DNA of 12,187 bases, from contig JAKLZA010000374.1 of NCBI GenBank assembly GCA_030704615.1, forward strand, positions 1 to 12,187. Direction: 5' to 3'. The notes below the pieces were generated by a model that was given only the letters and a program-made list of their open reading frames with translations, did not search any database and was not told the DNA's origin. The translations under genes were made by a program, and so were the position numbers. The first letter of the stretch is position 1. Each line of letters starts with the position of its first letter. Origin of the DNA: Takakia lepidozioides (Eukaryota; Plantae; Bryophyta). Shown piece by piece: positions 1 to 12,187 of the stretch.

Positions 1-1
1 G

Positions 2-255
2 AATCTCAAGGGACGGGCGGATACTTGGCATCGTATACAAAAACCAAGGCCCATGAGCTGGCATGATTTTCAAGTAGCCATAATCTTGAAATTTGGAGGA
101 GAAGATCAATCAAGTAAGATGAAGTGATGTTAGCAAGGAAGTTTGATGAGATAGATACCAATGTGGAAGAGTCTGTTACAGGGATGGAAGAGAAATTATC
201 TCTGATTGAGAAGGATAAGCATCAAACTGTTGTGTGTGATTTGCCCAATAACTAG
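2..255 (+). pseudogene. Degenerate retrotransposon gag-like fragment in the flank
   Basis: Manual translation from base 2 gives NLKGRADTWHRIQKPRPMSWHDFQVAIILKFG, matching the L.G.A..W....SW..F.....F gag pattern. An in-frame TAA follows at ~116-118, then a short open continuation. Confidence 0.4.
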
Positions 256-258
256 GCC

Positions 259-530
259 TCAGGAGGGCCTGGGCTTTGGCTCAGCCTTGAGACTTTCAAA
301 GTTGGTAAACAGAGGTACATGCACAATTCCCTTGATAGATTTGAAGAGAGCGTCTCTTTGGTGAGAGAACCCCGGACAGTGTATCAAAAAATGAGTATTG
401 TCTTCAAAATGCCCACACAACGGGCAATTGCACTCTCCCTTTCCTCTCTGCTTTTGTTTGCTGTTCAAAGGTAGGCTTCCTGCCCTGAGTTTAAATTTCA
501 GTCTAGTGCCGAGAGTGGGTAGACCTTGAG
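259..530 (-). pseudogene. C-terminal fragment of a non-LTR retrotransposon (LINE) ORF2 with CCHC zinc knuckle, cut by the large element
   Basis: LGTRLKFKLRAGSLPLN...CPLCGHFEDNTHFLIHCPGFSHQR resembles the LINE ORF2 C-terminal C-x2-C-x7-H-x4-C region. The N-terminal part of ORF 259..603 is only repeat A read in frame. Confidence 0.65.
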
Positions 531-531
531 C

Positions 532-719
532 TGTCGTGCGCATACATATCGCTACACAACTACATCGCTGTCCAAAACCACACAACACATGTGCACACCA
601 CACACTAGTATACCACTAGTCTACCACTAGTCCAGCCACTAGTCCAACCACTAGGCTACAACTAGTCAGTCACTAGGCTGCCACTACGCTGCCCACTATG
701 GCAGTCACTAGTCCACACA
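532..719 (-). repeat. Repeat A, terminal copy (188 bp, TG...CA)
   Basis: Identical by eye to 1050-1237 at a constant offset of 518. Confidence 0.97.
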
Positions 720-720
720 A

Positions 721-1047
721 TGATAAAGAAGAAGAATACAAGCACAAGCTCATGCGAGCTCACAAAGCTGAAGCATAAACTCATGCATATATAACCTCAT
801 CACTCAAATACAAGTCAAGCCAAGTGCACCCCACGCCATGGGGAATCCACACTACGGCGCCATAGCTAGGCGCGGTGAGGCTCAACTCGAGAAAGATGAG
901 CCTCCCGCGCTTGCCGTGAAGATAACCACTCCAGGGCCTAAATCTGCCTTGACCCCTGGATTGACACTTGGGCCAATCCCAAATGTCAATATGTAAAAGC
1001 TAGCTATTTCCTAGCTAGTTTCACACTAGTGGTAAAATAACTTGACA
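721..1047 (-). repeat. Repeat B, internal copy (327 bp, TG...CA)
   Basis: Near-identical to 11793-12118, with about five small differences, mostly homopolymer indels. Confidence 0.97.
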
Positions 1048-1049
1048 GC

Positions 1050-1237
1050 TGTCGTGCGCATACATATCGCTACACAACTACATCGCTGTCCAAAACCACA
1101 CAACACATGTGCACACCACACACTAGTATACCACTAGTCTACCACTAGTCCAGCCACTAGTCCAACCACTAGGCTACAACTAGTCAGTCACTAGGCTGCC
1201 ACTACGCTGCCCACTATGGCAGTCACTAGTCCACACA
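1050..1237 (-). repeat. Repeat A, internal copy. With B (721-1237) it forms a complete 517-bp 3' LTR-like unit
   Basis: Direct repeat of 532-719. Begins TGTGTGG in element sense right after the PPT. Confidence 0.95.
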
Positions 1238-1248
1238 ATCGCCCCCCT
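1238..1248 (-). promoter_or_regulatory. Polypurine tract (plus-strand primer)
   Basis: Minus strand AGGGGGGCGAT abuts the TG of repeat A, downstream of pol. Confidence 0.8.
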
Positions 1249-1497
1249 AGCTGGTGCTTAGGTCCCTCTAAGTCCAGGTAGCCACAAGATGTGATAGTGA
1301 CCATAGCCTCACTAAGTCCTCCACCACTATCCCTACTACACTCAAACTCGATAGATCAAGAGGCCGGGTGCAAGAGTTGCCCCATCGTTAGTCGCCGTCT
1401 TGCAACCTGTGAACTTGAGCTTGGGATCTCATGTATTGACTCCTATGAGCTTGGCCTCCCATGTCTTGTTAGCTGCCTCCAGTCATGTCCACTGCCA

Positions 1498-4400
1498 CTA
1501 TCCCAAGCAGTGTGGACACAACCAATCTCCGTCAGGAACCTTCTCAAGAGGTGGTGTCAAGCATCCCATATGCCAACCCCTTGAGCATCGATCACACACC
1601 AGCATGGTGGCTGCCCCTTTGGCAGACCCACAGAGCATGCACCTCAAACCTGCAGGTACCACTGCCAAGTTTGGGTCAACTCTGCCATCGACATTGGGAA
1701 GGTGACATGGCGCACAATTACGCACATGGTCTTTCCAAGTCATGCCATCCCGACCCTCTAAGATCAGGACCCCTGAGGGCAACACCTCTCGAACCCTCAG
1801 AATAACACGCCCTGCAGTAACATCCAGAGTCGTAGGAGCAGTCTGCTGCAAATAAACATAGTCACCAGGGCTAAACCTCCGAACCCCAGGACGATATCCT
1901 CCACCACGTATAGTGGCATACCTCAACGTATCACGGTGCTGTGCAATGGCAAGGTTCTCAAAAGCCATGGGCATGACTTTCTTGAACAACTCTGCACGCT
2001 GATCACATGCACGTACCCACACGTCCGGATCGTCAAGGTTAAGGACTTGAGCAGTGTCCCTACGAATGGCTGCAGGCAAATCCGGCTCTCGGCCAAAGAG
2101 AAGGAAATATGGTGAGAAGGAGGCAAGTGATGCTTGTTTGCTGAACCTGTAGCCCATGGCTAACCAAGGAACCTGAAGATCCCAATCTCCTAGGTGTCCC
2201 TTCTGCAAGCCATACTTGCGCAAACCCCTCTTCACCGTCTGAACAACTCTCTCTGCTAAGCCATCGGCCTCAGGATGATCCCGAGAAGTGGTGCGGTGGT
2301 CTATCAAGGCTTTATCACACAAAGCCTGAAACTCCCCCAAGAACTCTCTCCCTTGGTCCGTGAGTACCTCAGCTGGAGCACCAAATCGGCTAAGCACACG
2401 ATCCAAGAATGCATACGCAGCCCCCTCACTAGCCTTGTCAGGCAATGGAACCAACTCAATCCACTTGGAGAAGTGCTCCACCATCACCAACACATATCTG
2501 TGGTGGCGCATAGTCAGTGGCAACGGTCCTGCGAAGTCAAGACTCCACCTGTAGCCCAATCCCATGATAGGTAAAGGATGCAACTGTGGTGTAGGGGCGT
2601 TGAATGAAGCACGCACCCTGTCACACACCATGCACCTAGCCACAAACTGTTGCACCTCTGTATGCATACCACGCCACCAATACTGCCCCTGCAGTAAACT
2701 GTGAGTGCGTCGCACTCCAAAATGCCCCAACTCCTCATGGGCATGCCGCACTAACCGTGCACGCTGTGTGGGGTGAGGCACAATCCTCACCCGACCATCC
2801 TCCCACACTCGAAGTAGGTGTATCCCCTCCCACTTGAACCTCTTGGCTCGTTGCAGGATCCGATCCCTCTCCCTGGCAGTCACAATGGCTGCCGTGTCTC
2901 CCGTGCGGAGGTAGTCCAACACAGCCGAATCCTCATGTATATCTCTGGCACCACCTAGCTCATCACTAGCCTCAGGGTCCTCAGACACTCCGTCTACAGT
3001 CATCCTCTCACCATGCCACCGAGCTCCAGTGTCATCCTGCTGGCTCATGCATGGATTGCGACTCAATCCATCCGCATCCCGATTGACCAAACCCGGTCGA
3101 TGCACAACCTGAAAGTCATACTCCTGGAGTATAAGTGCCCACCGTGCAAGCTTCCCCGTAAGCTTGTCTGACTCCATCAACCACTTGAGTGGCTGGTGAT
3201 CCGTGACAAGGGTGAAAAGATTGCCGTATAGATAGCACCTGAAGTGTGCCACGGCCCACACTGCAGCTAAGCACTCTCCCTCATATGAGCTGTACTTAGC
3301 CTCTGCAGCGTTGTTCGAGCGGCTAGCGTAAGCCACTACGAACTCTCTTCCCTCATCATCCACCTGTGTGAGCACCGCTCCAAGCCCCAGCATGCTCCAA
3401 TCCGTATGCAGCTGAAAGGGACGCCCCCTGATAGGTCGTCTCAAGATAGGCGCCGAGGTCAACCTCGCCTTGAGCTCTTGAAAAGCTCGTTCCTGCTCAT
3501 CTTCCCACTGCCACTCCTGGTCCACCTTGGTCAGCTTGGTTAGAGCCTTTGCAATGGTACTAAATCCCTTGACAAACCGTCTATAATAGTTTGCCAACCC
3601 CATGAAAGCTCGAACTCGGCTCACATCCGTGGGGCGTGGAATTTGTGCAATGGCCTCTACCTTAGTCTGCTGTACCCCCAATCCTCCAGGATATATCATG
3701 TGACCCAGATACTCAATCTGGTTGTGGAAAAACTTGCACTTCCCCGGATGCAACTTCAATCCGTGCGCTCTCAAGCGCTCCAATACCACCTGAAGGTGTC
3801 TCTCATGCTCCTCCATCGTAACACTAAAGATGATGATGTCATCTATGTAGCACCGAGCAAAGTCCACCCCTGCTAGAATCCTATCCATGACTCTCTGAAA
3901 CTCTGCAGGAGCATTCTTAAGCCCAAATGGTAAGAACCGCCACTGATATAGGCAATCCTTGCCGTGCTCATTGATCCCCCAGAATGCCGTCTTCTGCTTG
4001 TCCGCCTCCTTGATTGGCAACTGGTGATATCCGGATCGTAAATCCAAAGTGCTAAAGGCCTTAGCATGCCCGATGGCATCAAAGATCTCCTCTGGTGTTG
4101 GCATGGCATACTTATCGGACTTGGTCTGACGATTTACAGGCCGGTAATCACCGCACATACGTCTCTCCGTCCAATTGCCATAGACATCCTTCTTGGCTGG
4201 CATCACTGTGGCTGAAGCATACTCTCCACCAGAGAGCTCCACCAAACCTGCCTCCCAGAGATCTTGAGTCCTCATCTGAATCAAAGACCTCTCCATGTCA
4301 CTATATCTATAGGGTCTCCGAAAGATTGGCGTGTCAGTGGCCAACTCAATACGGATCTCTTGACCCTTCAGTGCTCCCAAGTCCTTCAAACTGAAGGCAA

Positions 4401-4548
4401 AGCAATTCCTGTAAGCCCTCAGGAACCGCCGTATACGTCGTCTCTCTCCTCCGGTGACAATGGGTCCAATGTCAGGCTCCCAATTGTCCTCCGTAACTAC
4501 AACCTTAAGTCCAGTGGGCTTAGAGGTAGAGGACGCGTCCCGTGGTTG
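1498..4548 (-). CDS. pol: Pol: reverse transcriptase, RNase H, DDE integrase and PHD finger
   Basis: RT: RMCGDYRPVN, LDLRSGYHQ, LPFGLKNAPAEFQR, YIDD. RNase H: HTDWS, YEGECLA, TDHQPL, ADGLSR. IN: H-x4-H...CMVC, SLD/TDQG/AER. The frame is open upstream of the track start (4389, TTG) to the TAG at 4549-4551. Confidence 0.96.
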   Translation of the reverse strand, partial: QPRDASSTSKPTGLKVVVTEDNWEPDIGPIVTGGERRRIRRFLRAYRNCFAFSLKDLGALKGQEIRIELATDTPIFRRPYRYSDMERSLIQMRTQDLWEAGLVELSGGEYASATVMPAKKDVYGNWTERRMCGDYRPVNRQTKSDKYAMPTPEEIFDAIGHAKAFSTLDLRSGYHQLPIKEADKQKTAFWGINEHGKDCLYQWRFLPFGLKNAPAEFQRVMDRILAGVDFARCYIDDIIIFSVTMEEHERHLQVVLERLRAHGLKLHPGKCKFFHNQIEYLGHMIYPGGLGVQQTKVEAIAQIPRPTDVSRVRAFMGLANYYRRFVKGFSTIAKALTKLTKVDQEWQWEDEQERAFQELKARLTSAPILRRPIRGRPFQLHTDWSMLGLGAVLTQVDDEGREFVVAYASRSNNAAEAKYSSYEGECLAAVWAVAHFRCYLYGNLFTLVTDHQPLKWLMESDKLTGKLARWALILQEYDFQVVHRPGLVNRDADGLSRNPCMSQQDDTGARWHGERMTVDGVSEDPEASDELGGARDIHEDSAVLDYLRTGDTAAIVTARERDRILQRAKRFKWEGIHLLRVWEDGRVRIVPHPTQRARLVRHAHEELGHFGVRRTHSLLQGQYWWRGMHTEVQQFVARCMVCDRVRASFNAPTPQLHPLPIMGLGYRWSLDFAGPLPLTMRHHRYVLVMVEHFSKWIELVPLPDKASEGAAYAFLDRVLSRFGAPAEVLTDQGREFLGEFQALCDKALIDHRTTSRDHPEADGLAERVVQTVKRGLRKYGLQKGHLGDWDLQVPWLAMGYRFSKQASLASFSPYFLLFGREPDLPAAIRRDTAQVLNLDDPDVWVRACDQRAELFKKVMPMAFENLAIAQHRDTLRYATIRGGGYRPGVRRFSPGDYVYLQQTAPTTLDVTAGRVILRVREVLPSGVLILEGRDGMTWKDHVRNCAPCHLPNVDGRVDPNLAVVPAGLRCMLCGSAKGAATMLVCDRCSRGWHMGCLTPPLEKVPDGDWLCPHCLG
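1507..1641 (-). other. PHD finger (C4HC3) at the integrase C-terminus
   Basis: CMLC...MLVCDRCSRGWHMGCLTPPLEKVPDGDWLCPHC. Confidence 0.93.
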
Positions 4549-4551
4549 CTA
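4543..4551 (-). promoter_or_regulatory. Candidate programmed stop-codon readthrough site UAG CAA CCA
   Basis: Only stop between the same-frame MTase and pol ORFs. The 3' hexamer fits CAR-YYA. Confidence 0.7.
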
Positions 4552-6015
4552 TGCTGCAACCTCTTGAGCAGTACTCCCTACCTGCTCAGTCAATGACAAG
4601 GCATCATCCTGCCCCATCATCTCATCCTTGAGGACCTCCTCAACTCGAGAAGAATCCCCAACCTCATCCATCACAGCCGCCTTGGCTGCCAACTCCCTCT
4701 GAACCTCGAGCACCTCCCACGTGTGCCATGGATGCATGCACCCCGTGGTCCTCATATGCTCGCCCCCACTCACTGCCTGTACCGTCTCGGTAGGCAGAGA
4801 GACCATTGAGGGAAGTGTATTCCGCACTCTGCGTTGCTCAGCTAGAGCCAAGCTGATAATCCAGGTCAAGCAATTGAGATCCATTGCTTGCCCCAACACT
4901 TGACGACGTGATGCCTCAGAAAGAGACGACACCGCCGTGGTACCAGTGGTAAAACCCATTGCCCGCTCACGCTCGTCAGCATTAGGCTCCACTAACTGCT
5001 GCAACTGAGCATCCCACAGGAGGCCAGGTCCACTATCCCGGAAAGCATGCGATCCTGGGAAGCTGAGCAGTGTAGGTAATGCTGCTCGTGGTTGACCCAC
5101 CTTGTTGACCACTGCCAAAGGCGAACGGTCATCGTGTCTCACACGTTGAGACTGCCTCCCTGTGTCCAGAATGTTATCCACTGTGAGATGTGCTGGCCGC
5201 TGCACCCCATCAAATGCACGCTTGAGCAGTGCGGGTGGCATCATGTTAGTCCACCATAGCCGTGGACGATGAGCCCGTGACCCCACTGTAGCTGCATCTA
5301 GCAACACTGCTGACCCAAGCCACGACCGGACTTGATGCACACTGGCCATCACCCTGGCCCGAGAATCGCCCATCAGTGGCACATTCTCCAAGATGTATGC
5401 TGGAGATACAGCTTGATGAAGCTGCAAGTGGCGCAAAACCCGCACCATCTCCCAAAACAGACCCGACCTCGAGTCTCGCAATCCATTGCCATGCCCGGCT
5501 GATGAATGCCCTTGGCAGGGCCAACCTGCCACTACCAGATCAATGGAGCCAACCCGCTCCAAATCCTGCGCCCCCAGCAACGAAATGTCTGCTGGCAAGG
5601 CCTGCTGATATCCACGAATTGCAGACACCGACAACAACTCAGGGTACCGCTGCACCAACTGAGCAACATGGCGAAGTGAAACGCGTCGTGCAGTCTCATC
5701 CCTCTCCACATACAGGTAACGCCGAACTCGTACACCTGCCTGTAACACAGCAGCCAATCCGGTGCTGATCCCGCCAAACAAGTCCAGAAGACAAATGCCT
5801 TCATCCGGAGACTGCCACACAATAGGTGTGGTGTCCAATGGAGACAATTGAGGTGGTCCTGGTGCAATCCCCACACTCTCCTCCTCTCCTGACGGTACAA
5901 AAGCCTCCACCCAGGCTTGTTGCACCCGTCGATCAGCATCCCGCTGCAAATCCTTGCTCGTGCCCCACAATGGAGTCTGAGCAACCATGGTAGGCAACTC
6001 CGCCATACCATACAT
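4549..6015 (-). CDS. DNMT3-like DNA (cytosine-5) methyltransferase domain (~4860-5796) within the polyprotein
   Basis: Motif I LLDLFGGISTG, II YVERD, IV DLVVAGWPCQGHS (catalytic Cys at 5515-5517), VI ILENV, VIII AHRPRLWWTN, IX ERERAMGF, X RRQVLGQAM, all in canonical order. Confidence 0.92.
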   Translation of the reverse strand: MYGMAELPTMVAQTPLWGTSKDLQRDADRRVQQAWVEAFVPSGEEESVGIAPGPPQLSPLDTTPIVWQSPDEGICLLDLFGGISTGLAAVLQAGVRVRRYLYVERDETARRVSLRHVAQLVQRYPELLSVSAIRGYQQALPADISLLGAQDLERVGSIDLVVAGWPCQGHSSAGHGNGLRDSRSGLFWEMVRVLRHLQLHQAVSPAYILENVPLMGDSRARVMASVHQVRSWLGSAVLLDAATVGSRAHRPRLWWTNMMPPALLKRAFDGVQRPAHLTVDNILDTGRQSQRVRHDDRSPLAVVNKVGQPRAALPTLLSFPGSHAFRDSGPGLLWDAQLQQLVEPNADERERAMGFTTGTTAVSSLSEASRRQVLGQAMDLNCLTWIISLALAEQRRVRNTLPSMVSLPTETVQAVSGGEHMRTTGCMHPWHTWEVLEVQRELAAKAAVMDEVGDSSRVEEVLKDEMMGQDDALSLTEQVGSTAQEVAA

Positions 6016-6027
6016 GTCATCCTGCTC

Positions 6028-6895
6028 TCCGGAGGTGGTACATCCTCTGAATGAGCATTGCCCTCAAGCAACTCTCTAGGCCAACTCACTGCCGCTGTGA
6101 ATGCTGCTAGTGTCGGCATCTTGCCTCGCTGGGCAACCGCAACTCCTCCTATGAACGTCACAGGGAGCTGCACACGCCGGCCCTCCCCTGACTGCCATGC
6201 AGGCCTATAGGAAGCTGACTCCTCCCAAAAATCCAGGGTGAAGCCCATGGGGTACAACACTGCCCCACCAACCAGGACATCGTATGAGACTGCGTCTGTC
6301 ACAATGGCCTTGGCTCGCATCACTGAGCCATCTGTAGGGTGATCCGGCCGTAGTCTGATAGCCAACTCATGCCGTGTCATGCCCCGAGCCTGCTCCGATC
6401 CTCCCAGAGACGTCTGTATCTGGAAAGGACAAGGCTCCATATCCGCCTCCGTGAGGCCCAAGCCTGCAATAGCAGCTCTGCCCAGCATCAGTGGCTGAGC
6501 TCCCGAGTCCAACAAGACTCGCAGTGGCCGGTACCTCTTGCCTGCCGGTCCACTCAAACAGAAAATGCCATCCTGGTTGTCTAACATGACAACTCCAGGT
6601 GTCACCATGGCGCGCTCAATGGCTGGCCTAGCTGGCAGCTCCATCAACCTGGCAGCTGCAGCTTGCCATGGCGCCGCCGTGGCAGTCTTGACCCTCAAAT
6701 CCGAGGATCCCTCCGGCACTACACCTCCCACTATCTCCGCAGAAGATGAAGTAACCTCCCCACTCTCACAGAGTGTAGCTGCCAGCCTGAACACCTCAGC
6801 TGGTCTTATCCCCGGCGTCGCAATCATGGTAGCCGAGAACAATGGAGCCTGGCACACAGATGTGGCCGCTCCTAACAGCACACTAGCTGCCGTAG
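6028..6895 (-). CDS. Retropepsin-like aspartic protease segment, joined to its neighbours by 1-bp frameshifts
   Basis: VLLDSGA (Asp at 6507-6509), flap-like IQTSLGG and YDVLVG in ORF 5532..6881. The part of that ORF below ~6028 is off-frame overlap with the MTase. Confidence 0.85.
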
Positions 6896-8754
6896 CCTAG
6901 CCTTGGCAACACTAGGTAGTGGTGCTACCCGTGTAGCTCTCCCCAATGGCATAGTAACCTCCGCCTCGGTAACAGTCGGGCGAGAACTAGGTGCCATGGA
7001 TGGCGTCGACACTGTCTCCGCCAATGTGAATGACTGAGGAAGCCTAGCCTGACGGCTTGCCTCCCCACGCTGTGGATCCAACTCCACCTCTGCACCTCGT
7101 GGCTCAGGAACTCGTGCTGCTCCTCGAGTCACGGCTGCAGCAGACTCCACCTGCACTAGTGGTAGTGCTGCTCCACACATGAATCCCATGCCTCCCATAT
7201 CTCCTCCCTCAGGAGCAGGAGGTGGACCATCCGGCCTTAGAGCCGGTACCACCTGAGCTGTAGCCATGGCAGCGAGCCTCTGCTCTAGCTGCTGAAGCCG
7301 GTTGGCCATGCCTTGGTCAACACCCTGACCTCCGCGTCCTTGGCCACGTTGAGCTTGCCCTTGGCCTGCACCTCGTGGCTGGCCACCTCGTCCTCTCTGG
7401 GCTGCTCCACCTCGCCCCCGGCCACCATTGTTCCCTTGGAACTGGCCTGGGCGCAACTCAGGATGCAAACCATAACACTGGGCCTCTCCATGCCCGTGCT
7501 TGCCACAATGCCCACACTGCAACTGTGCAGGCTGTGCATGTGCCGACCCTTTGCCTCCCTCTGGGCAATCCTTCTTGACATGGGGTCCTCCACATGTCCA
7601 GCACACCACATCCGCCCGTTGTTGGCCAGCAAATGAAGGGAGAACCCCTTGCATCTGAGGTCCTCTCTGCCTTCCCTGAGCTTCACCTGAGCCCCCTTGT
7701 TGCCTTGAGCACGTTGAGGTAGTGGTTGGCTAGGAGCACCACTACCCCGTTGTCTCCTTAGCAAATCCCACCATGACCACTCGTTCCTCCACCATGTTGA
7801 GCTCTATCCGCTCTGCCAGCAAAAACACATTGCTAAGGTGGGTTGGGCCGCTTGTAGAGAGTTGCATCCCGCACCCTTCTCCTCAGCTCCTTGTCCAATA
7901 TCCCATACCAGAATTGGACTGCCTGAGCTTCCGTACCCCTTGGGTTACATTTATCAAGCGCCTCATGCGAGTGAAAGCCTCCCTCAAGCTCTCGGTCGGC
8001 TTCCGTTGGAACTCTTGCAAGCTCCGCAAACTTCTCTGTCCTCACCCCTTGGTAGTTCCCTCTCAACTCTTCGAAGAACTCCACAACAGGGTTGAAGGCA
8101 GCACGGGTGCTAGTGCTGGTGCGGTAGTGGCTTGGGTGGACGTCGTAGCTACTGTAGTACCACCAGTCCCACTGCTGCTTGCTGAAGCTGCCGGTGCAGC
8201 GGCAGGTGTAGCCACTGCCCTCGTGGCTCTAGTGCCCCTAGTGATGGAGACATAGTCGGGGTGACCAGTACATCCTCCACTCCTCGATCTCAACCTCATG
8301 CCCCCGCCTGAACTCATGGTAATCATCCATAGGCGGCCCCTCAAGGTGCTGAAACAGCCCTTTCCATGCCATGAAAGGCGTAAATAGTTGGATTGCGCAT
8401 TTGCTGCAAATCACACCAACTATCAAACTCTTGGATAAAATCATCCAACTCGATGGTGCCCACCGCCCCAGAGTACCTTCGTGGCCCCTTGGTAGCTCCA
8501 TACATCTCCTCCATTGTGTCCCACAATAATGGCAAAGAAACAACTTGCACCGCCGGTATGAGCCCTCCTGATTCACAATCCGAATCAGAACCTTCCGTGG
8601 AAGACACAGGAGGTGAAGGTGGCCTAAACCGCACACCTCGTCTCGTGTACCCACTAGTATCGCTAGTGCTCGAACCGGCACTGTCCCCAGCAACTAGTGG
8701 CACCTCCGTGTTGACACTCAACGTCATGAACATGTCCCCTAACCCCCTCTCCAC
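6896..8754 (-). CDS. gag: Gag (capsid-like region, two Zn knuckles, RGG-rich tract), broken by several frameshifts
   Basis: Consecutive fragments in ORFs 8341..8754, 8238..8693, 8063..8344, 7833..8084, 7285..7764 and 6872..7654: YSG...LDDFIQEFD; AWKGLFQHLEG; FFEELRGNY; CWTCGGPHVKKDC; CGHCGKHGHGEAQC. First in-frame ATG at 8733; true start uncertain. Confidence 0.8.
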
Positions 8755-8989
8755 AAGTAACCAACCGGTAGAGAACCTGTTGCGGCTTATGGTTTGGGAA
8801 TACTAAGTTCCTAACATAGCCTACACTGAACCTGCATGACCATGGATATCATAAGATACTGGTCAAACCACCGCCCTCCCACGAGCTTCAAAATTCCCTG
8901 GCTTCCAGGACCACATGCAGTCTTAGTCCCACCAGTGCCTCCACAAGTCAGCACAGGCCATCCCCAGGTCACACGGGCCACATAGACCA

Positions 8990-10265
8990 TAACAGCCCAC
9001 ACAGCTCACTGGTCACAGCCGTCACAGTCCCCCAGGCCACTGGGCAACAGCCTGTCAGCCCCTCACAGCTCGTCAACAGCCTCAAAGGCCTCAGGCACAG
9101 CCTGTCACAGCCCCTCACATCCCATCACAGCCCCAACGGCCTCAGGAGCGGCCTGTCACATCCCCTCACAGGCCCGTCACATCCCCAAAGGCCTCATGCA
9201 CTGGCCTGTAACATGCCCGTCACAGCCCGTCACAGCCTCAAAGGCCTCATGCACGGCCTGTCACAGCCCCATCACAGCCCCAAAGGCCTCACACGGCCTG
9301 TCACAGCCCCTCACAGCACCGTCACGCACAGAATCAGCCCCAAAGCCTCAGGCGCGGCCTGTCACAGCCCCTCACAGCCCGTCACAAGCCCCAAAGGCCT
9401 CAGGCACGGCCTGTCACAGCCCCTCACACCCGTCACAGCCCCCAAGGCCTCATGCACGGCCTGTCACAGCCCCTCACAGCCCTCACACAAGCCCCAAGGC
9501 CATGGGCACGGCCTGTCAACAGCCCCTTCACAGCCCTTCACGCCCCAAAGGCCTCATGCACGGCCTGTCACGCCATCCCAGCCCCAAAGGCCTCAGGCAC
9601 GGCCTGTCACAGCCCCTCACAAGCCCGTCACATCAGCCCCAAAGCCTCAGGGCGGCCTTTCACAGCCCCTCACAGCCCGTCACAGCCCCAAAGGCCATGC
9701 ACGGCCTGTCAACAGCCCTCACAGCCCTTCCAACACAGCCAGCCTAAAGGCCCTCAGCACGGCCTGTCACAGCCCCTCACAGCCCGTCACACAGCCCCAA
9801 GGCCATGGGCACGGCCTGTCACAGCCCCTCACAGCCCGTCACAGCCTCAAAGGCCTCAGCAACGGCCTGTCCACACAGCCTCCACCAGCCCGTCACAGCC
9901 CCACAGGGCACAGCACAGCCCATCACAGCCCATCACAGCCTCAAAGGCCTCAGGCACGGCCTGTCACAGCCCCTCACAGCCCATCACAGCCCAAAGGCCA
10001 TGGGCACAGCCTGTCACAGCCCGTCACACAGCCCCACAGGCCTCAGGGCACAGCCTTCACAGCCCGACAGCCCGTCACAGCCCCAAAAGGCCATGGGCAC
10101 AGCCTGTCACAGCCTGACCTCAAACAGCCCGTCACAGCCCCACAGGGCACGGGCACAGCCGTTCAACAGCCCATCACAGCCTGTCACAGCCAGCCACAAC
10201 CGCACATCCGTCACAGCCTGACACACAGCCCGTCACAGCTTGCCACAGCAGCTTGCCACAGCCCA
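8990..10265. repeat. Tandem array of 10-bp CACAGCCCNT monomers organised in a ~51-bp higher-order unit
   Basis: Consensus CACGGCCTGT CACAGCCCCT CACAGCCCGT CACAGCCCCA AAGGCCTCAGG, roughly 20-25 units with degenerate edges. Confidence 0.95.
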
Positions 10266-10769
10266 CACATGGCGCTCTGGCAGTTTAGCCATTTCTCCAA
10301 GGGGTTTAGCCACGCCAAGCTAGGGTTTGTGTCTCTTGGACTCTAGGCTTCTTTCCACCGAGCTATGGTGGCTGTGAGAGAAATCAGCAAGGTATCCTTG
10401 TTCTTTTCGGCTCCCACACCACCATAGTAGCCCTAAGCCATGAGGTGGTTGCCACAAACCAAGCCTTCTTTCTCACTTAGCCTCCCCAACACGCCACTAA
10501 ACTCAATGGCAAACAACCAAGCCCTGCTGGTTCCCAGCCCTTGTGGAGCACTCATTCAAGCACTCTCATTGCCATAGCATCTGTCTTAGAGCCTATTCCA
10601 GCCCTCTACACCTGCTGCTTCCAGAGTTGCGCTCCCTTCAAGCTTGAAGTTGAAACCAGAAACCCAATCACATAGGCCCTACAAGTGCTGTTCTTTCACT
10701 CCAAGTGGAAACCAGCCCTAGACCTTCCGTTCTAGCTCTCTAAGCTTGAAAACAAGAGCCTCAATGGGC

Positions 10770-11086
10770 TGAAGGCATGCTCCACACATGCCCCACTCTC
10801 ACCAAAAAGAAATCAGCTCCTTTGCTTCATTTCTTCTTGCACCACACAAACCTGAAAATACAAGCTTCAGCATGCTGAAAGCATGCTCTACATGCCCTAC
10901 AGGGAAACCAAGCCCCTTCCTTCCTTCTTGCACTCCCACACCTAAAAGTGCAAGCCTCACCAGCCGATAGCATGCTCCACACATGCACATTGCCCTCAAT
11001 AAGGGAAGTCAGCCTTCCCTCTTCCTTGCTTGCCCTCCAAGCTGAAGATGGAAGCTTCATGAGCTGAATACATGCTCCACACATGC
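10770..11086. repeat. Four spaced copies of CATGCTCCACACATGC in the leader
   Basis: Copies at 10776, 10882 (variant), 10971 and 11071. Confidence 0.7.
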
Positions 11087-11776
11087 AACCTCTTCACACA
11101 AGAGATATCAGCCCCTATCTTGGCTCCTTGGCTCCTTGATGCTCTCTAAGACAAGACTAAGCACTCCATAGCCTTTGCCAAGCTCCTGAAACCCTAAGGC
11201 TTACATTTCCAGCCACAAGACACTTCTCTTTGGTGCAAGAGCTCTTCTTCCAAGCTCTAAACCCTAGGTGCACATCCATGGCCTTGCCGCACCTCTTAGC
11301 TCCTGTTCCAAGCCCTGCTCTTGCCATGACAAGAGCCCTCTCAATGCTGAAGCTCGAGATTGAAACCCAATCTCACATACTCCACAAAGTGCACTGATTT
11401 GCCCCAAGCCAAATCAGCCCTTTCGCTTGGTCTTGCAATCCTTCACACAATGACAAGCTCGCATTCCCAAGTCCAGTTCTCAGCTTTGCCACCAAAGCAC
11501 TATAACCTGCTCTTGACTGGTCCTCTTCCCAATCGTGCTTGCTCATGCATGTACACAATCTGAAACCATCAAGGTGCTCTGGATTACCTACAGTATGGTG
11601 CTTTCATCTCTGAAGCTGAAGATCGAATGCCAAGGTTACCACTCGTAACCCACATCGCCTCCGCTTCTAACAACCAAGAGCTCCACGTGCTCCTTGCATA
11701 ACAACTTGGTTTCTCTCATTCTCAAGCAAAAACCACAAGTGCTCAACTAAACTCGTATCTAGCACTCTAGATACGA

Positions 11777-11792
11777 GCTCATCTTTCTCGAG
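11777..11792 (-). promoter_or_regulatory. Non-tRNA primer-binding site, complementary to a segment of repeat B (candidate self-priming)
   Basis: Sense CTCGAGAAAGATGAGC directly follows the CA end of 5' B and is the exact inverted repeat of 11958-11973 (and 886-901). Confidence 0.75.
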
Positions 11793-12118
11793 TGATAAAG
11801 AAGAAGAATACAAGCACAAGCTCATGCGAGCTCACAAAGCTGAAGCATAAACTCATGCATATATAACCTCATCACTCAAATACAAGTCAAGCCAAGTGCA
11901 CCCACGCCATGGGGAATCCCACCATACGGCGCCATAGCTAGGCGCGGTGAGGCTCAACTCGAGAAAGATGAGCCTCCCAGCGCTTGCCGTGAAGATAACC
12001 ACTCCAGGGCCTAATCTGCCTTGACCCCTGGATTGACACTTGGGCCAATCCCAAATGTCAATATGTAAAAGCTAGCTATTTCCTAGCTAGTTTCACACTA
12101 GTGGTAAATAACTTGACA
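11793..12118 (-). repeat. Repeat B, 5' terminal copy (326 bp)
   Basis: Direct repeat of 721-1047. Not preceded by A in element sense; homology ends at the A/B junction. Confidence 0.97.
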
Positions 12119-12187
12119 GTCATCCAATGTCCTCACCCATGTCCTCTGACTGGAAACAATTGTCAAGGAAGTTTTCTGCCTAACTTC

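Follow-up and report, generated by a model that had tools for sequence, protein, structure and literature searches.

A circularly permuted Ty3/Gypsy element with split direct repeats in Takakia lepidozioides and its relatives of the KnitGypsy-Dnmt3 kind

Textbook long terminal repeat (LTR) retrotransposons integrate linear cDNA by the ends of their LTRs, circles are regarded as dead ends, and split direct repeats are taken for the signature of elements with a tyrosine recombinase. The element described here lies on the minus strand of a 12,187-nucleotide stretch of DNA from Takakia lepidozioides (contig JAKLZA010000374.1 of assembly GCA_030704615.1, positions 1 to 12,187; hereafter the window), where it occupies positions 532 to 12118. 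It combines a Ty3/Gypsy coding region, including a DDE integrase, with two repeats, A and B (A' and B' in element sense), that are split between its ends.

The original prediction knew of no prior description of this combination. It had been noted by de Mendoza et al. in 2018 in one figure legend, where Gypsy elements of Klebsormidium nitens with a Dnmt3-type methyltransferase (KnitGypsy-Dnmt3) are given a DIRS-like repeat structure together with Gypsy domains (PMC5890265, Fig. 4c legend), and the K. nitens locus L085 of the present set shows the layout directly. The reverse transcriptase (RT) of KnitGypsy-Dnmt3 groups with Gypsy RTs in the phylogeny of the same paper (PMC5890265, Suppl. Fig. 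14a), which does not cover termini, target-site duplications (TSDs), palindrome, priming or mechanism. Literature searches for later work on KnitGypsy, or on split direct repeats in Gypsy elements, gave nothing beyond the 2018 paper, and the papers searched seem to contain no description of termini, TSDs, palindrome, priming mode or wide host range.

KnitGypsy-Dnmt3 and the window element share a Gypsy pol with a Dnmt3-like C5 cytosine DNA methyltransferase (DNMT) upstream of RT, DIRS-like A-coding-B-A-B repeats, a CA-GC-TG palindrome and a self-complementary primer-binding site (PBS). The pol open reading frame (ORF) of the window is about 49% identical to K. nitens proteins, and in the DNMT region identity to the corresponding part of K. 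nitens KFL_009030040 is 45% (E = 3e-60), whereas the nearest relatives of the window are found in liverworts (72-78% pol identity to proteins of Calypogeia, Riccia and Marchantia). Further differences are the length of B' (about 326 nt in the window, 659 nt in K. nitens), the stops that separate the DNMT and RT ORFs of the window, and the 4-bp TSD, which L085 has in common with the family and which the window copy lacks. The methyltransferase within the coding region ties the window element to the KnitGypsy-Dnmt3 lineage, of which it is a liverwort-type member; judged by these identities alone, the host would probably be a liverwort or a near relative.

Three other systems share single features with the element. 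Members of the DIRS order (Ngaro, PAT and, as cited in the original prediction, TOC1) likewise have a partial repeat at the 5' end and a partial-full-partial series at the 3' end, a layout that implies a joined-end intermediate. They have a tyrosine recombinase and no DDE integrase, protease or TSD, whereas the window lineage has a protease, a DDE integrase, TG…CA ends and 4-bp TSDs. In the retroviruses prototype foamy virus and human immunodeficiency virus 1, integrase tetramers of the DDE type cleave the head-to-head CA…TG palindrome of the two-LTR junction, which yields integration-competent ends (PMC1180852, PMC1905944, PMC4372172); a comparable cut would occur in the window lineage. The retroviral palindrome arises only when LTR ends are ligated, and its use is a side route, whereas the palindrome of the window lineage is built into U3 of every LTR, its ligated LTR ends lack TG/CA, and its spacer is 2 nt instead of 4. 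Tf1/sushi and Tcn1 elements of the Ty3/Gypsy group, compared here by priming mode, also have a PBS after U5 that is complementary to their own LTR and not to a tRNA (PMC6317226 for Tcn1 in plants), but carry ordinary LTRs and a chromodomain where the window lineage has permuted repeats and a PHD finger.

Repeat layout and boundaries of the window copy

Self-comparison of the window (plus-strand coordinates) gave two A copies, 532-721 and 1050-1239, with 100% identity, and two B copies, 722-1047 and 11794-12118, which differ by five one-base indels and one shifted dinucleotide and by no clean substitution. Repeats of 190 and 326 nt at such identity far exceed chance. Differences of this kind between the B copies suggest a noisy, unpolished long-read assembly rather than age; the indels fall mostly within short homopolymer runs. 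A 2-nt GC spacer (1048-1049) stands between A and B, and the plus strand of the element begins with TGTC at 532 and ends with GACA at 12118, exactly where the original prediction had placed its ends. All long coding ORFs are on the minus strand. Read in element sense from 12118 to 532, the order is B'-PBS-gag/protease/DNMT/RT/RNase H/integrase/PHD-polypurine tract-A'-B'-A', so that the repeat comparison and the ORF positions bear out the order first proposed. The features that define the element are as follows.

11794..12118, minus strand: 5' B' copy, comprising part of U3, R and U5; opens in element sense with the terminus TGTCAAG, of which relatives share TGTCA
11957..11973, minus strand: PBS-complementary segment in the 5' B'; predicted 5' end of the genomic RNA (start of R) and self-primer
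11777..11793, minus strand: PBS of the self-priming type, directly after U5; 17 nt complementary to the middle of B'
4549..6015, minus strand: C5 cytosine DNA methyltransferase, of the Dnmt3-like type of KnitGypsy-Dnmt3 (PF00145, E = 6e-13)
1498..4389, minus strand: RT, RNase H, integrase (HHCC zinc finger and DDE core) and C-terminal PHD finger in one ORF of 963 amino acids (Pfam RVT_1, RT_RNaseH, Integrase_H2C2, rve, PHD)
1240..1254, minus strand: polypurine tract (PPT; …AGGGGGGCG), directly upstream of A'; also kept in the related loci L001, L003 and L004
1050..1239, minus strand: A' copy 1, the U3 portion within the complete LTR
1044..1053, no strand: palindrome GACA-GC-TGTC at the A'|B' junction, with the two integration termini head to head
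722..1047, minus strand: B' copy 2; part, with A' copy 1 and the GC spacer, of the sole complete reverse-transcribed LTR (722-1239)
719..724, minus strand: B'|A' junction, with the last U5 base joined to the first U3 base and no nucleotide lost or added, as seen when B'|A' is set against the B'|PBS and PPT|A' boundaries
532..721, minus strand: A' copy 2, terminal; closes in element sense with …CACGACA

The PPT (1240-1254) adjoins A' and the PBS adjoins U5, as in Ty3/Gypsy elements. With the PPT next to A' and the PBS next to B', the reverse-transcribed LTR is A'+B', in agreement with the original reading. The two complete, identical terminal LTRs of Ty3/Gypsy elements are missing; the window has one full LTR, a 5' B' and a 3' A', and its repeats follow the order A1-internal-B1-A2-B2 of DIRS-type split direct repeats. 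Relative to LTR-internal-LTR the integrated copy is circularly permuted, with the break at the A'/B' junction, and its B'|A' junction is an exact join of U5 to U3; here too the first interpretation was upheld.

Inside both A copies, at 603-686 and 1121-1204, an 11-nt unit (CACTAGTCTAC) is repeated 7.5 times. Degenerate third repeat copies in the flanks were considered and rejected, local alignment of the flanks to A and B at four loci giving z about 0.

Layout, termini and priming across relatives

Loci were fetched from Marchantia, Calypogeia, Riccia, K. nitens, Closterium and Haematococcus together with 80 metagenome contigs of the Joint Genome Institute, and A and B were mapped on all of them. 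Two loci, K. nitens L002 (cut at a contig end) and Haematococcus L087, contributed no repeat information, and the flanks of Marchantia L090, in which a stretch of N separates B from the terminal A, were excluded from use.

A 3' A-B-A series was present in about 26 non-redundant loci, including 9/9 genome-assembly loci that show repeats. These loci come from at least six genome assemblies (among them Klebsormidium, Closterium and three liverwort genomes) and from many metagenome contigs. Both ends were visible in 15 loci, of which 14 have the order B…A-B-A (L090 across a scaffold gap) and the remaining one, L058, has it with a shortened terminal A'. The many independent loci that end at TGTC/GACA with B…ABA are the kind of support the original prediction had asked for. 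A B-A-B series upstream of pol was found in none of at least 24 loci with sufficient upstream sequence, and no locus had ordinary AB…AB LTRs, the 23 loci without A-B-A having been subjected to a sensitive upstream-versus-downstream comparison. K. nitens L085 shows both pairs, B at 360-1018 and 14099-14754 and A at 13917-14096 and 14755-14934; in Closterium L086 the 3' A-B-A is present and a 5' B was not found. B…A-B-A is a family trait, the normal integrated form of an old streptophyte (plant/algal) Gypsy lineage. A pairs and B pairs are identical inside young copies yet very different between lineages, and must therefore be remade in each cycle.

Of the 23 loci so compared, only L084, a distant relative with 42% pol identity, has a 670-nt repeat pair of 74% identity (2333-2996 and 11470-12128) that flanks pol, with only CGACA after B.

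The integrated termini of the family are 5' TGTCATG… and …CAYGACA 3', and those of K. nitens are TGCCATG… and …CACGGCA. At the A'|B' junction the two termini stand head to head around a 2-nt spacer as CA-GC-TG, a core kept in copies from Klebsormidium, Closterium, liverworts and metagenomes. Where the spacer varies, its forms GT, AC and AT have the look of deaminated GC. The ends of the LTR itself, A'+B' as reverse-transcribed, have no consistent TG/CA. The recognition ends of the integrase appear to sit inside U3, as the CA-GC-TG palindrome, and not at the LTR ends.

In most copies B'|A' is an exact join of U5 to U3. Two copies deviate. L006 (10838-10856; L019 is the same locus) has a 17-nt filler at this junction that resembles a nearby piece of B, together with two retained PPT bases, and may be likened to aberrant retroviral two-LTR junctions. 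In L058 (13415-13443) the terminal A' is reduced to its final 29 nt, which follow the U5 end in an exact join, yet the copy has a perfect TSD, CCAC; at that end the terminal integrase site seems to be all that is required of A'. Defects such as these are of the kind found at de novo end joins, and they are not inherited, since they differ from copy to copy; they speak for a junction that is formed afresh with every insertion.

Perfect 4-bp TSDs, for which the chance of a match is 1/256 per copy, flank 14 copies. Ten have the order B…A-B-A (L003 GTCA, L006 TCTC, L029 AAGG, L033 ATGT, L036 TTTA, L042 TGAC, L058 CCAC, L072 GGTA, L085 TCTT and L088 ATGT) and four carry B…A only (L009 TGTG, L011 ATTA, L027 CCAA and L050 TGTT). 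Two further copies match at 3/4 positions, L054 and L074 are ambiguous, and there is no TSD in the window copy or in L090 (scaffold gap). The likeness to TSD-less recombinase elements drawn in the original prediction therefore fails for the family, to which the window copy is an exception.

Duplications of 4 bp are the mark of a DDE integrase, and no integration enzyme other than a conserved DDE integrase was found. A Pfam scan of 17 ORFs gave no match to a tyrosine recombinase or Phage_integrase, which sustains the initial identification of the DDE integrase as the sole candidate. Its residues D618, D678, E713, H551, H556, C586 and C589, and the aspartates of the RT YxDD motif, are invariant across 24 aligned relatives.

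The PBS is located directly after U5, as first proposed, but is not the tRNA site it had been taken for. No TGG or tRNA complement was found at the U5 boundary; the 17 nt are a perfect complement of mid-B', a match reached in the window by 0/500 and 0/300 shuffles. In every lineage of the family, 10-22 nt beginning at the last base or bases of U5 are complementary to a mid-B' segment at the homologous position, and in most elements the observed complementarity was matched by none, or by at most 2, of 300-500 shuffles (by none in the best-matched elements). Pairing is kept across five sequence versions (the window, Calypogeia, a second liverwort-like group, a distant metagenome group with 42-50% pol identity, and K. 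nitens), with covariation at the homologous partner position in L003, L029, L036, L058 and L085. Such covariation is best read as the signature of Tf1-type self-priming, in which the 5' end of the RNA is a predicted position. U3 would then consist of A' and the first approximately 146 nt of B', and the remainder of B' would be R-U5. With the predicted RNA start about 146 nt into B', the 5' B' retains some U3 upstream of the start, and this segment could act as a core promoter; the next round draws its U3 and R from the 3' A'B'.

Proposed route of integration and its alternatives

The reading preferred here, with a probability of roughly 0.65, is that the window holds a young copy of an old Ty3/Gypsy lineage of the KnitGypsy-Dnmt3 kind, with cDNA whose ends become joined and an integrase that opens the palindrome of the LTR next to the PBS. 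Ordinary reverse transcription would first yield a linear A'B'-internal-A'B' molecule, whose U5 and U3 ends would be joined, either as in a two-LTR-circle junction or by an end-to-end template jump. In the PBS-proximal LTR the DDE integrase would then nick both strands of the palindrome, in each case after CA, which would leave recessed CA-3'OH ends with 2-nt 5' overhangs. Insertion of this permuted linear form with a 4-bp staggered cut would give B'-internal-A'B'-A' between 4-bp duplications. The more general proposition is that the whole DDE-integrase lineage, from Klebsormidium to liverworts, must pass through a joined-end cDNA form and integrates from a palindromic attachment site in U3, so that integration from the LTR-LTR junction, a classical model since discarded, is the normal route and the polarity points to an asymmetric step; the odds on this stronger statement are about even.

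Several observations weigh against the preferred reading. The circle or joined-end form and the palindrome cleavage are deduced from integrated copies alone, and the RNA start and poly(A) site are predictions. A symmetric two-LTR circle has two identical palindromes and should also give B'A'B'-internal-A', which was seen in 0 of at least 24 loci; its absence calls for an asymmetric step. Forms with B'…A' only occur in about 13 contigs, all of them short-read metagenome contigs (L009, L010, L011, L023, L024, L027, L031, L045-L048, L050, L061, L064 and L075; four with perfect 4-bp TSDs), and both real products and assembly collapse are possible sources. Such forms could stem from A/A recombination, from cutting at both palindromes or from assembly collapse. 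The window copy itself is flanked by GAGC (528-531) and GTCA (12119-12122), a mismatch that confirms the lack of a TSD pointed out at the outset, and its flanks extend the palindrome in element sense by one nucleotide (C) 5' of TGTC and by three (GCT) after GACA. A different route of entry, or a rearrangement, may lie behind this copy.

GCT, which corresponds to the spacer and the first base of the opposite half-site, also follows the terminal CA in L018 (about 3567) and L089 (about 13943); this makes three cases where chance would give about 0.4 among 26 loci. The window, L018 and L089 may represent insertions or rearrangements that bypassed normal integrase processing.

Two ideas could account for the polarity within the preferred reading. 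The 5' LTR would become double-stranded about 10 kb of synthesis before the 3' LTR, and may therefore be bound and cut first. Alternatively, the U5|U3 join would be made only at the right end, through an end-to-end template jump.

An unlikely alternative is a symmetric two-LTR circle, formed by host end joining, opened at either A'/B' palindrome and then integrated. In its favour are the permutation itself and the exact U5|U3 junction with occasional defects typical of two-LTR circles, and integrase cleavage of palindromes at two-LTR junctions is already known. Random choice between the palindromes, however, predicts equal numbers of B'A'B'-internal-A' copies, which would be dead on arrival yet still visible, and none were seen in at least 24 loci against about 26 with a 3' A-B-A. 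The original proposal that a two-LTR circle is opened within one LTR meets the same difficulty, in that it predicts two products where one is seen.

No more probable is a route without any circle, in which plus-strand synthesis arrives at the U5 end of the 3' LTR, RT jumps end to end onto the finished 5' LTR and recopies A', and the integrase pairs the left half-site of the 5' LTR with a right half-site lying further downstream. Its strength is the fixed polarity, since B'…A' and B'…A'B'A' can arise under it and B'A'B'…A' cannot; exact and filler-bearing U5|U3 joins also fit, and B'…A' copies with TSDs exist. The scheme is hypothetical throughout, and its simpler product, B'…A', is confined to short-read contigs, with 0/9 genome-assembly loci with repeats showing it, so that assembly collapse or A/A recombination may be responsible.

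Replication of the DIRS/Ngaro type, with RNA that reads through to the terminal A', internal junction copies that act as templates for rebuilding the ends and a recombinase that integrates a circle, would explain why the repeats follow the A1-internal-B1-A2-B2 layout of split-direct-repeat elements. It is very improbable and close to refuted, since the scanned ORFs hold no tyrosine recombinase, the DDE integrase is invariant, 14 copies have 4-bp TSDs, PPT and PBS lie exactly at the LTR boundaries, and the junction defects vary by copy and hence are not inherited. A local accident on an ordinary AB…AB element (assembly error, nested insertion or unequal recombination), to which the noisy assembly with one-base indels, the missing TSD and the part of another retroelement in the left flank would be agreeable, is refuted for the layout by the same arrangement and palindrome in about 26 loci of at least six genome assemblies and metagenome contigs and by the failure to find any ordinary AB…AB relative, and may still explain the missing TSD of the window copy.

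Coding region and meaning for the lineage

The pol ORF has RVT_1, RT_RNaseH, Integrase_H2C2 and rve in the order typical of Ty3/Gypsy elements, with a protease motif upstream. DNMT lies upstream of RT within the retrotransposon coding region; like the PHD finger, it was absent from the first account of this DNA. The PHD finger (1498-1640, minus strand) follows the integrase and was found in most relatives. Chromoviruses have a chromodomain at the position following the integrase. The remaining features of the window are as follows.

9013..10239, no strand: leader array of about 23 copies of a 52-nt unit, between PBS and gag
6872..8754, minus strand: gag-like region in several frames, with an ORF (6872-7654) that has two CCHC zinc knuckles; from translations, no Pfam match
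5532..6881, minus strand: ORF with the aspartic-protease-like motif LLDSGAQ; identified by the motif alone, no Pfam match
1..531, plus strand: left flank, outside the element, with a gag-like ORF fragment (2-124)

The frame changes between the gag region, the protease ORF and the DNMT ORF, and there are stops between the end of the DNMT ORF at 4549 and the RT ORF, whose start lies at or before 4389. In the relatives P0014 and P0054, DNMT, RT, RNase H, integrase and PHD form a single ORF. Some or all of the breaks in gag, protease and DNMT may be sequencing errors, because the B copies differ by one-base indels.

The leader between PBS and gag is about 3 kb long and contains no minus-strand ORF above 85 amino acids; its 52-nt units differ by many one-base indels. 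The array also generates long spurious plus-strand ORFs of 183-377 amino acids. The left-flank ORF (2-124, plus strand) has a weak resemblance to Retrotrans_gag (E = 0.011, under the Pfam cut-off), and the window element may sit in or beside another retroelement.

The lineage contradicts both the rule that LTR retrotransposons integrate linear cDNA and the rule that split repeats belong to tyrosine recombinases, while it keeps a DDE integrase and 4-bp duplications. Annotation tools that require two full LTRs and adjacent TSDs may miss or misfile such elements. The DNA methyltransferase and PHD finger of the lineage bear on the interaction between transposons and host chromatin, and the question whether an internal palindromic site can be the normal substrate of an integrase finds a natural test system in this lineage.

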